Source: Mizuhopecten yessoensis (Eukaryota). From it: a stretch of 62,810 nucleotides of DNA. The translations under genes were made by a program, and so were the position numbers. How positions within the stretch are numbered: the stretch's first letter is position 1; the number at the start of each line of letters is the position of its first letter. This document shows, piece by piece, positions 16,001 to 22,000 of the stretch. The stretch covers positions 245,861 through 308,670 of the forward strand of contig NW_018408657.1 in NCBI RefSeq assembly GCF_002113885.1, given 5' to 3'. The notes below the pieces were generated by a model that saw nothing but the letters and a program-made list of their open reading frames with translations, ran no database searches and was not told the DNA's origin.

Positions 16001-19000
16001 AACAGGTAATGTATGCTGGAAAAAACAGGAAAAAACATAACAGATTCTGTATACTGTACATTACATAATGTATGGCATCTAACTTTGGGTATAAAGTTGT
16101 GGGATCGCACAATGTTAAAGATGTGCGGTGGGCACATGATGTACAAATAGTGTGCACGATGTGCGAACATTGTGCACGATGATAAACTGTGCGATTATAG
16201 GGTGCACCCCACTGAGGTGACTGCAAGTACACAAATACTGGTTTCCACAGCATATCTTAACCACTGTTTCAAGAACTGTGTAAATTGGCTCCAAACTTTG
16301 TAGATATGCACAGGGTGAAGTACAGGCATTAAATCTAGCTAGTTACCAGAACGATTAGTCAGACGACATGCACGCCTGGTCTAACTGTATGTATATTTAC
16401 AGTATAGGTTTGGTAGGACGGTCATTGACAGTGAGACTATTAATCAGTCTAGGCCCTAATTAAAACATAACTGTGTATGTTTGTTTACAGTATAATATTG
16501 GTAGGACGGTCATTGACAGTGAGACTATTAATCAGTCTAGGCCCTAATTAAAACATAACTGTGTATGTTTGTTTACAGTATAATATTGGTAGGACGGTCA
16601 TTGACAGTGAGACTATTAATCAGTCTAGGCCCTAATTAAAACATAACTGTGTATGTTTGTTTACAGTATAATATTGGTAGGACGGTCATTGACAGTGAGA
16701 CTATTAATCAGTCTAGGCCCTAATTAAAACATAACTGTGTATGTTTGTTTACAGTATAATATTGGTAGGACGGTCATTGACAGTGAGACTATTAATCAGT
16801 CTAGGCCCTAATTAAAACATAACTGTGTATGTTTGTTTACAGTATAATATTGGTAGGACGGTCATTGACAGTGAGACTATTAATCAGTCTAGGCCCTAAT
16901 TAAAACATAACTGTGTATGTTTGTTTACAGTATAATATTGGTAGGACGGTCATTGACAGTGAGACTATTAATCAGTCTAGGCCCTAATTAAAACATAACT
17001 GTGTATGTTTGTTTACAGTATAATATTGGTAGGACGGTCATTGACAGTGAGACTATTAATCAGTCTAGGCCCTAATTAAAACATAACTGTGTATGTTTGT
17101 TTACAGTATAATATTGGTAGGACGGTCATTGACAGTGAGACTATTAATCAGTCTAGGCCCTAATTAAAACATAACTGTGTATGTTTGTTTACAGTATAAT
17201 ATTGGTAGGACGGTCATTGACAGTGAGACTATTAATCAGTCTAGGCCCTAATTAAAACATAACTGTGTATGTTTGTTTACAGTATAATATTGGTAGGACG
17301 GTCATTGACAGTGAGACTATTAATCAGTCTAGGCCCTAATTAAAACATAACTGTGTATGTTTGTTTACAGTATAATATTGGTAGGACGGTCATTGACAGT
17401 GAGACTATTAATCAGTCTAGGCCCTAATTAAAACATAACTGTGTATGTTTGTTTACAGTATAATATTGGTAGGACGGTCATTGACAGTGAGACTATTAAT
17501 CAGTCTAGGCCCTAATTAAAACATAACTGTGTATGTTTGTTTACAGTATAATATTGGTAGGACGGTCATTGACAGTGAGACTATTAATCAGTCTAGGCCC
17601 TAATTAAAACATAACTGTGTATGTTTGTTTACAGTATAATATTGGTAGGACGGTCATTGACAGTGAGACTATTAATCAGTCTAGGCCCTAATTAAAACAT
17701 AACTGTGTATGTTTGTTTACAGTATAATATTGGTAGGACGGTCATTGACAGTGAGACTATTAATCAGTCTAGGCCCTAATTAAAACATAACTGTGTATGT
17801 TTGTTTACAGTATAATATTGGTAGGACGGTCATTGACAGTGAGACTATTAATCAGTCTAGGCCCTAATTAAAACATAACTGTGTATGTTTGTTTACAGTA
17901 TAATATTGGTAGGACGGTCATTGACAGTGAGACTATTAATCAGTCTAGGCCCTAATTAAAACATAACTGTGTATGTTTGTTTACAGTATAATATTGGTAG
18001 GACGGTCATTGACAGTGAGACTATTAATCAGTCTAGGCCCTAATTAAAACATAACTGTGTATGTTTGTTTACAGTATAATATTGGTAGGACGGTCATTGA
18101 CAGTGAGACTATTAATCAGTCTAGGCCCTAATTAAAACATAACTGTGTATGTTTGTTTACAGTATAATATTGGTAGGACGGTCATTGACAGTGAGACTAT
18201 TAATCAGTCTAGGCCCTAATTAAAACATAACTGTGTATGTTTGTTTACAGTATAATATTGGTAGGACGGTCATTGACAGTGAGACTATTAATCAGTCTAG
18301 GCCCTAATTAAAACATAACTGTGTATGTTTGTTTACAGTATAATATTGGTAGGACGGTCATTGACAGTGAGACTATTAATCAGTCTAGGCCCTAATTAAA
18401 ACATAACTGTGTATGTTTGTTTACAGTATAATATTGGTAGGACGGTCATTGACAGTGAGACTATTAATCAGTCTAGGCCCTAATTAAAACATAACTGTGT
18501 ATGTTTGTTTACAGTATAATATTGGTAGGACGGTCATTGACAGTGAGACTATTAATCAGTCTAGGCCCTAATTAAAACATAACTGTGTATGTTTGTTTAC
18601 AGTATAATATTGGTAGGACGGTCATTGACAGTGAGACTATTAATCAGTCTAGGCCCTAATTAAAACATAACTGTGTATGTTTGTTTACAGTATAATATTG
18701 GTAGGACGGTCATTGACAGTGAGACTATTAATCAGTCTAGGCCCTAATTAAAACATAACTGTGTATGTTTGTTTACAGTATAATATTGGTAGGACGGTCA
18801 TTGACAGTGAGACTATTAATCAGTCTAGGCCCTAATTAAAACATAACTGTGTATGTTTGTTTACAGTATAATATTGGTAGGACGGTCATTGACAGTGAGA
18901 CTATTAATCAGTCTAGGCCCTAATTAAAACATAACTGTGTATGTTTGTTTACAGTATAATATTGGTAGGACGGTCATTGACAGTGAGACTATTAATCAGT

Positions 19001-22000
19001 CTAGGCCCTAATTAAAACATAACTGTGTATGTTTGTTTACAGTATAATATTGGTAGGACGGTCATTGACAGTGAGACTATTAATCAGTCTAGGCCCTAAT
19101 TAAAACATAACTGTGTATGTTTGTTTACAGTATAATATTGGTAGGACGGTCATTGACAGTGAGACTATTAATCAGTCTAGGCCCTAATTAAAACATAACT
19201 GTGTATGTTTGTTTACAGTATAATATTGGTAGGACGGTCATTGACAGTGAGACTATTAATCAGTCTAGGCCCTAATTAAAACATAACTGTGTATGTTTGT
19301 TTACAGTATAATATTGGTAGGACGGTCATTGACAGTGAGACTATTAATCAGTCTAGGCCCTAATTAAAACATAACTGTGTATGTTTGTTTACAGTATAAT
19401 ATTGGTAGGACGGTCATTGACAGTGAGACTATTAATCAGTCTAGGCCCTAATTAAAACATAACTGTGTATGTTTGTTTACAGTATAATTTTGGTAAGACA
19501 ATCGTAGACAGTGGAACAACTAATCTACGCCTCCCCATCAAAGTGTTCAAAACACTGGTCACAAAAGTTAAACAACATTTACAGGTGAGTCTTGTTCATG
19601 CTGATTGTTATATTTGATAATAATAGAGATTGTGTAACCAATATTTGTATTAATAAAACAATGGTAAGATCATACCATCCTGAACTAGTACAGGGCTATA
19701 CTCAACTCCTATAACATTTCTCACTTGCCTATAATTATATATAGCTACATGGGTTTTCTCTAGATACTCTGATTTCCTCCAAAATTAGGACCCCAAGCTT
19801 TTTCCATCCTCATTCCTGGCCAATGAGAGTGGTTTTGAACTGGTTTCATGAGTGTTGTTAAATAAATAATGTTTAATTGAAAATCTTACTGAGAATGACG
19901 AGATCATTTTGAAGTAGGTTAAGTGACTTACTTGACGTAGTTCCTTCTCTCCAATTGGAGAATAGGCCCATAAACAAGTCCTCTCCACAACACCCTACCT
20001 TCTGCCTTCTGTTCAGCGTCTGACCATGATGAGAAGCCTAGGTGTTTCATTTCTTTCTCTACTGTCCTACTCCAGGTTTCTTTTGGTCTTCCTTGTTTCC
20101 TTTTCCCTTCTGGTGTCCAACCAAGTGCTACACGTGCATGGCAGTTGGGCTCCATTCTCAACACATGCCCTATCCATCGCCATCTTCTTGTTTTTATGAT
20201 GCCACTGATTCTGTCAGTAACTTTTTCTGGCCAGACTATTCTTAGTACCTGTCTGAGACATTTATGTAGGAAGGTGTCTAGAATTTTCTCGTTGCCTTTG
20301 GTCATTTTCCATGTTTCTGCTCCATATAAAAGCACAGATAATACATTTGAATGGTAAATATTTTACTTGGTCTTCCTGTTGATTTGATTGCTTGCCAAGA
20401 TTTTTGTAAGCTAATGAAAGGCTTATCTTGCTAGTCCTAGCCTTCTTATATCTTCATCTGCACCGCCTGTTGTATTAATGGTTGCTCCAAGATATACAAA
20501 CGTGTTAACATCTTCAATACGTGTCCCATGTATTCTGACTGGCCGGGTGTTGTTGGCAAGTTTTGTCTTGGCGGTGTTGACATTCAAGCCCTTTGTTTTT
20601 GAGTAGTTGTTTAGCAAGCTGGTCTTCTGCTGAATCTGTTCTCTGTTGCTGGATAGTAGTGCTATGTCATCCACATAGTTTAGTTCTTCTAGTTTAGTTC
20701 TTGGGTTCCATCGGATGCCAGCTGTGTTGTTGCTATTAGTTGTTGCTCTCATTATCCAGTCGATAACTAGTAGGAACAAGAATCCTGACATGTTACAGCC
20801 CTGCTTTACTCCCGACTTCAGTAGGTTAATTAGGCCACTGGAAACTTTGATATAGCTTTAATTCATTATAATGGTCAATAGTCATGGGAAATATCCTTGT
20901 CAGTTATATAGGTACTACATTGTGTTTGTCTATTTAACCATAACATGTCTAACCTTTTAATGTATGATCTTTATGTAATGAGTTTTAAAATTGAAAATTC
21001 GGCATTTCAAACAACCAAATTTTGAAGAAGAAAAATTGCATCTGAAATCAATTAATTATGTTCTGGTTGTATAAGTTAGAAAGCTATAATATTAACACAT
21101 TGTTCTAATTGTAAACTGCTTTGTCCTGTAAAGTGTTCTCAATAAGAGTATCCTAGTTGGTTGTACAGACTTTTCATTGTCTTCTGTCAGATGTCCGGGA
21201 CACTGCCGAGAGAAAACTTCTGGGAAGGCGTCGACCATATTTGTTGGGAAGAGGGTAAAATTCCATACAACGACTTTCCAACCATAACAATTTCATTTCC
21301 CCGAACCAAAAACTCCTCTTTTGATCTCGTTGTTTCTCCACAGGTAAGTCTCTAACATCAAATACAACAGCTGCTATATATTAATTGAACACAAAATCAA
21401 ATTTTCAGGTATTATACATAAACAAATACTTTATGTCTCATAGGGTTCTTAATCTATTACTTAGGCTGCTAGGCTAGTGGATGTGATCTATTGATCTGGA
21501 CACAGGCTGCTAGGCTAGTGGATGGGATCTATTGATCTGGACACAGACTGCTTGCTATGCTAGTGGATGTGATCTATTGATCTGGACGCAGACTGCTTGC
21601 TAGGCTAGTGGATGTGATCTATTGATCTGGACACAGACTGCTAGGCTAGTGGGTGTGATCTATTGATCTGGACACAGGCTGCTAGGCTAGTGGATGTGGA
21701 CAGCTCTATTGATCTGGGCACATGCTGCTAGGCTAGTGAATGTGATCTATTGATCTGGTCACATGCTGCTAGGCTAGTGGAGGTGATCTATTGATCTGGA
21801 CAAAGGCTGCTAGGCTAGTGGATGTGGAAAGCTCTATTGATCTGGACACATGCTGCTAGGATAGTGGATGTGATCTATTGACCTGGACACAGGCTGCTAG
21901 GCTAGAGGATGTGAAGAGATCTATTGATCTGGACACAGGCTTCTAGGCTAGTGGATGTGATCTTTTGATCTGGACACAGACTGGTTGCTAGGCTAGTGGA

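Follow-up and report, generated by a model that had tools for sequence, protein, structure and literature searches.

An 88-bp tandem array in intron 5 of a beta-secretase-like protease gene of the scallop Mizuhopecten yessoensis places 35 decoy 3' splice sites in front of the exon that holds the second catalytic motif of the enzyme, and we consider it likely that this array is a minisatellite of the mirage type with a history of tandem duplication, decay, amplification and homogenization. The array lies in a 62,810-nucleotide stretch of NCBI RefSeq assembly GCF_002113885.1 (contig NW_018408657.1, positions 245,861 to 308,670 of the forward strand), which we refer to as the window and whose first letter is position 1 in the coordinates given below. 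Twenty intronic and six exonic bases are common to the decoys and the true acceptor, and because those bases are shared, a splice-site score that reads only them is equal for all 36 acceptors; only the last acceptor can yield a working protease. The locus offers a natural case in which 3' splice-site choice would depend on downstream sequence, the mirror image of a donor case in the human F7 gene. With four junction arrays in this one gene and one in an unrelated gene, the mirage phenomenon seems to be present in a mollusc and open to genome-wide study.

Tandem Repeats Finder describes the repeat as a period of 88 with 35.5 copies and 99% matches at 16386-19513, and a register walk resolves 35 full copies in exact register at 16386-19465 on the + strand, in agreement with an original prediction for this DNA that had counted 35 decoy 3' splice sites before exon 6, each with a diverged pseudo-exon. 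That prediction had also described 34 copies as mutually identical, and copies 2-35 (16474-19465, + strand) do form 34 units with 0 mismatches among them in the register walk, whereas copy 1 (16386-16473, + strand; decoy AG at 16401-16402), at the edge of the array, differs from the consensus at unit positions 8, 10, 22, 23 and 24. Position 24 is T in copy 1 and in the true exon and A in all other copies, and four of the five changes are private to copy 1. Continued in register, the row ends with the true junction as copy 36, in which unit positions 1-23, corresponding to the last 17 intronic and the first 6 exonic nucleotides, are identical to the array and the sequence beyond them is divergent. 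The 3' end of intron 5, with the true tract and the acceptor AG at 19481-19482, occupies 19466-19482 (+ strand) and is the same as the unit start; position 19482, earlier given as the true acceptor, is the G of this AG, and exon 6 starts at 19483.

The motif TTTGTTTACAGTATAAT occurs 35 times, at 34 decoys and at the true site, and one variant of it stands in copy 1. Decoys and true site have the tract, the CAG and the first six exonic bases in common, the 35 decoy acceptors reading cag/TATAAT or, as the variant in copy 1, cag/TATAGG (the slash marks the splice junction). The 88 nt upstream of the acceptor are also the same for copies 3-35 and the true site, which gives exact bounds to the earlier statement that nearly all copies share this context, and a branch-point-like CCCTAAT lies 31 nt upstream of every acceptor, followed by a U/G-rich tract and CAG. 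Each unit contains the two donor-like sites that had been pointed out, GTAGGA at unit positions 28-33 and GTGAGA at 46-51, and translation confirms that the decoy pseudo-exon carries DSE in place of DSG together with an in-frame stop, a TAA at codon 19. Exon 5, which ends in ..TGTAAGGAG, would be joined to TATAATTTTGG at the true exon 6 and to TATAATATTGG at a decoy, where the reading frame meets the TAA after 18 codons, just as the prediction expected a premature stop from any use of a decoy. No open reading frame of at least 40 amino acids was found in the array on either strand, and the idea of a coding repeat was rejected. No N lies within 30 kb of the array, and both of its ends are anchored in unique sequence.

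The unit can be traced to the junction in front of which it stands. Rotated by 6 nt, its entire length is colinear with a 95-nt source at 19460-19554 that comprises 23 intronic and 72 exonic nucleotides. In a gapped alignment, the exon-derived part is identical to the true exon at 48 of 61 positions, with 15 gap columns in addition, and scores 43 against -19 +/- 7.5 for shuffles (maximum 15); the last third of the unit, taken alone, shows marginal similarity (p about 0.05). Divergence between decoy and true exon is uneven, amounting to 24% over the first 14 codons (10 of 42 nt, with 2 of the 10 changes synonymous) and giving way to indels thereafter, and the figure of roughly 30% proposed earlier fits the ungapped comparison (18 of 54 nt, or 33%) while passing over this unevenness. 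The copied exonic part ends at 72 of the 102 nt of exon 6, and there is no donor at its homologous end. Because the entire unit, intronic part included, is colinear with the 95-nt source, we interpret it as a junction duplicate and not as a paralogous or alternative exon; it reads as a truncated duplicate that was never a complete second exon. A search of the 988-Mb assembly gave no match to the 88-bp unit beyond this locus, on which ground a dispersed satellite or transposon was rejected as its source, and the exon-6 peptide likewise matched only this locus, with no second BACE-like exon 6 found among the best candidates scored, a search that was not exhaustive.

Copy 1 speaks for the age of the array. 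Because this copy keeps the T24 of the true exon alongside its private changes, the array lineage must be much older than its last round of amplification, and the behavior of copy 1 is that expected of an edge copy escaping homogenization; together with the colinear source, this bears out the original idea of an old junction duplicate that was later amplified or homogenized. The hexamer CTGGTC occurs immediately left of the array (16376-16381, + strand) and a second time inside exon 6, immediately right of the 95-nt source (19555-19560, + strand). Slippage and unequal exchange usually act on short direct repeats, and the CTGGTC bracketing may be a trace of one or the other, although we regard it as suggestive only.

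The host gene encodes an aspartic protease of the BACE or memapsin (beta-secretase-like) type. Its exons were located by motif and then searched one by one, which yielded two catalytic motifs, DTGSS in exon 2 and DSGTT in exon 6, and an exon order colinear with the Pfam Asp profile (matched at profile positions 15-31, 50-118, 155-193 and 290-314). BACE1 and BACE2 were the best PDB matches for exons 1, 4 and 6, and the exon 6 translation matches BACE1 with an E of about 4e-7. On the + strand, exon 1 (772-1008) runs from the start codon to ..GSPPQQ, exon 2 (3222-3310) holds the first catalytic motif, and exon 3 (5793-6009) is followed by exon 4 (6583-6720; PFFDSLV..QLCG..GGSL) and exon 5 (15093-15227; ..GGVD..EWYYEV..DCKE, donor GTAGGG). 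The true exon 6 (19483-19584, + strand) has 34 codons in phase 0 and a GTGAGT donor at 19585, and it is followed by exon 7 (21191-21343, + strand), exon 8 (about 22825-22908) and exon 9 (about 23499-23646); the numbering of exon 6 is correct provided that no non-coding exon precedes these. The array takes up about 3.1 kb of the 4255 nt of intron 5. A strong cryptic donor-like TTG/GTAAGA lies inside the true exon 6 at 19491-19498, 10 nt past the acceptor, where the decoys have the weaker GTAGGA.

We propose that the array began with a tandem duplication of a segment of roughly 95-101 bp, bracketed by CTGGTC, over the intron 5/exon 6 acceptor. The upstream copy would have turned intronic, since the downstream copy alone kept its connection to the remainder of the exon, and would then have decayed through about 21-24% substitutions, several indels, the change from DSG to DSE and the gain of a stop. 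Slippage or unequal exchange would subsequently have amplified and homogenized the decayed copy to 35 copies, and exchange within the array would hold the intronic side of the true junction to the unit sequence, with selection on the catalytic exon halting homogenization 6 nt into exon 6. Rather than a device, the array is in all likelihood a by-product of such a history, either neutral or of slight cost.

The last acceptor would be picked since no other stands before a genuine exon whose strong donor (CAG/GTGAGT) lies 102 nt further on. Downstream of each decoy lie two UAGG motifs and no donor of comparable strength, GTAGGA being weaker than GTGAGT and GTGAGA having a poorer exonic context. 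UAGG is a known silencer motif, and the 71-nt pseudo-exon has two TAGG where about 0.24 would be expected, while the true exon has none. RNA spliced to a decoy would carry the premature stop and would probably be removed by nonsense-mediated decay. RNA structure was considered as the selector and rejected: the predicted unpaired probability of tract and AG is 0.21 at the true site compared with 0.25-0.38 at the decoys. Examined as a structured or known RNA, the unit gave fold z-scores from +1.3 to -1.1 and no Rfam match at E<=1.

Mirages, minisatellites that span an exon-intron boundary, were first described in amphioxus Adh3 and then in TnC, the globins BflGb6 and BflGb9, and PGBD5 (PMC3087553, PMC3902484). 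Reverse transcription PCR indicated that the amphioxus genes are spliced normally despite the repeated AG/GT signals, and the arrays show concerted evolution from which edge copies are excluded, with the mechanism of origin called unclear (PMC3087553, PMC3902484). As far as its sequence goes, the scallop array has all the structural properties of a mirage: it is a head-to-tail minisatellite array of 88 bp repeated 35 times, its unit joins 23 intronic to 72 exonic nucleotides with a splice signal, the true junction is terminal and continuous with the exon as copy 36, and copies 2-35 have evolved in concert with copy 1, the edge copy, left out. Amphioxus mirages share the boundary-spanning unit, the donor and acceptor types and the terminal position of the true junction, and BflGb6 is, like the scallop array, of the acceptor type, combining the 3' end of an intron with the 5' part of an exon. 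In contrast to these mirages, the scallop array resides in a bivalve mollusc and not a cephalochordate, has 35 copies where BflGb6 has 3-6, and combines mutually identical copies with an exon-derived part that is strongly diverged from the true exon; four junction arrays in a single gene also set the scallop case apart. We found no earlier report of mirages in molluscs in the literature searched, coverage of which was incomplete.

In intron 7 of human F7 (IVS7), the first unit of a 37-bp variable number tandem repeat holds the exon 7 donor, and the 5-9 identical pseudo-donors are functional yet silent, as the most upstream site wins (PMC1557585). Donor arrays at exons 1, 3 and 4 of the scallop gene are direct counterparts of this repeat, whereas the 88-bp array multiplies an acceptor. 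The site in use would here be the final one of the row instead of the first, a choice for which a rule of scanning from 5' to 3' gives no account. Recursive splice sites and poison or decoy exons resemble the scallop units in being splice-site-like intronic elements of a long intron whose inclusion adds a premature stop, but the units lack AG/GT and originated by array amplification and not as a single conserved element. The Rogers model of intron gain and tandem exon duplication likewise begin when a stretch with splice signals is duplicated in tandem, although in the scallop no new intron or alternative exon has resulted and the exonic part of the duplicate, truncated and dead, lacks the combination of both splice sites, phase and open frame that marks a duplicated alternative exon. 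The mirage type is already known, and what is new here are the three donor-junction arrays in the same gene and a kinase-exon case elsewhere in the genome. The original prediction had recognized neither that the array is of the known mirage or F7 IVS7 kind nor that it is one of four junction arrays in the gene.

Half of the eight arrays in the gene are derived from junctions, namely those of the exon 1, 3 and 4 donors and the exon 6 acceptor. The exon 1 donor array (993-1489, + strand) has a 35-bp unit repeated 14 times, made of the last 16 exonic nt and GTACAT..., and contains 12 CAG/GTACAT sites, the true one at 1008/1009 included. At the exon 3 donor, an 18-bp unit repeated 19 times (6005-6338, + strand) joins the last 5 exonic nt (CACAG) to GTAAAT... 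and presents 18 CAG/GTA sites. The exon 4 donor array (12353-14277, + strand) consists of a 65-bp unit repeated 30 times with about 79% matches, an exonic part of about 30 nt and 17 CTG/GTAAGG sites, and its founding copy is the true exon 4 end with its donor (..GGAAGTCTG/GTAAGG) at 6690-6752 (+ strand). Between this true junction and the 65-bp array, separating them, sits a 5.6-kb long terminal repeat (LTR) retrotransposon (6753-12352, + strand) with direct terminal repeats and a 1210-amino-acid open reading frame for protease, reverse transcriptase and RNase H; its left terminal repeat has about 60 bp absent from the right one. The arrays with units of 51 bp (3704-5388), 36 bp (14490-15030) and 41 bp (21463-22295) showed no junction similarity when compared with all junctions of the gene. 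Minisatellites make up 30% of the window and 43% of the span of the gene, and most arrays in the window are 79-95% identical and keep their variants, compared with 100% for copies 2-35. Introns 1 and 3 begin with similar sequence (ACAG/GTACATA.TAT, at 1002-1030 and 6005-6040; cross-match z about 6), a likeness that may be due to chance or hint at a sequence preference in array seeding.

Several observations weigh against the history and the mode of site choice proposed above. CTGGTC is not kept between units, unlike in a simple slippage product, and a later loss of 6 nt must be assumed. Selection of the last acceptor is inferred, as is what happens to RNA spliced at a decoy. The excess of TAGG was noted post hoc (p about 0.02), and assembly or polishing could have produced the perfect match among the 34 copies. 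In addition, four junction arrays out of eight are far more than random seeding would give (about 5% per array; rough p about 4e-4), and because the gene exceeds the random-seeding prediction in this way, a purely neutral, unbiased origin is incomplete as an explanation.

The most serious alternative takes the array to be real and attributes its copy number and perfect homogeneity to assembly, through collapse or expansion, gap filling, or polishing with multi-mapped reads. Such an effect would be compatible with a mirage history, and we regard it as possible, if rather doubtful. In its favor, the 34 copies stand at 100% identity beside 79-95% for the majority of arrays in the window, and the scaffold-level draft assembly, in 82,659 pieces, contains runs of N. 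Arrays sampled elsewhere (L011 and L036) stop at N runs or show 100% identity beside an N. The 88-bp array, however, is free of N within 30 kb and reaches unique sequence at both ends, its exact register and its distinct edge copy were resolved, and neighboring arrays in the window retain variants. It also seems to us unlikely that the decoys are functional, whether by tuning the protease through regulated unproductive splicing and decay or by acting as a landing pad or sponge for proteins that bind U/G tracts or UAGG. Every unit does contain what looks like a full 3' splice site (tract and CAG, with CCCTAAT 31 nt upstream), the donor-like sites permit pseudo-exons of 28 or 116 nt, and junction arrays are over-represented in this BACE-like gene. 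Yet the normal splicing and length instability reported for amphioxus fit neutrality, predicted accessibility does not separate the true site from the decoys, and the unit has neither a stable fold nor an Rfam match.

Two further suggestions of the original prediction did not hold. It had considered a paralogous or formerly alternative exon as the source of the pseudo-exon, and the amino-acid changes do appear conservative (K>R, I>V, V>I), as would suit a paralogue or a former mutually exclusive exon 6. We find this very improbable, as the genome searches with the unit and the exon-6 peptide match only this locus, the copy takes in 23 intronic nt and stops short of the exon end with no homologous donor, the share of synonymous changes in the first 14 codons fits neutral decay, and the copy has a stop and no longer encodes the catalytic glycine. 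Recursive splicing had also been raised, in which the decoys would remove intron 5 stepwise, and the 4.3-kb intron does hold many 3' splice sites at even spacing, which might invite that reading. A recursive ratchet needs AG/GT to regenerate a donor, however, and the decoys read cag/TATAAT; none of the 35 presents a recursive AG/GTRAGT site, and because they lack AG/GT, strict recursive splicing is excluded. Steps through GTAGGA or GTGAGA would leave inserts of 10 or 28 nt and shift the frame, and we give stepwise removal of the intron next to no credence.

Junction-derived arrays were also looked for outside the window. Among 26 exons sampled from multi-exon genes, each taken with flanks of 1.5 kb for a total of 193 kb, arrays cover 11.6% of the sequence, and one of the 26 exons has a clear junction array. 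This exon (L069) belongs to a kinase gene unrelated to the BACE-like gene and ends in ..ADWWSYGVLM; its array (1164-1538 of L069, which lies on G000:C3644, - strand) has a 44-bp unit in 8.5 copies, made of the last 26 nt and GTAAGT. The first copy, the sole one in frame, has the donor CTAAGT instead of GTAAGT, which could be an error, a polymorphism or the mark of a disabled gene. It is conceivable, though we would stop short of calling it probable, that junction-seeded minisatellites are a genome-wide scallop feature, extending beyond cephalochordates and far commoner than random seeding allows. If so, the pattern would imply either duplication aimed at splice junctions, coupled to transcription or splicing, or selection for extra splice signals, and it would provide dozens of natural tests of site choice among identical donors or acceptors.

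Other repeats were noted in the window and the sample. Short arrays of a G-rich repeat of about 157 bp (..GGGGCAGAGGGGC..) stand at several unrelated places, at 1854-2729 and 24166-24554 in the window and in the sampled loci L045 and L048; this repeat is probably a dispersed element with an internal satellite. Within 41700-42941, a second gene on the + strand has an exon ending in ..FIFDKRLMDHQQFLE/gtgagt, which we take to resemble a sterol desaturase. About 90 nt downstream of this exon begins a GAG/GTG-rich array of a 35-bp unit in 30 copies.

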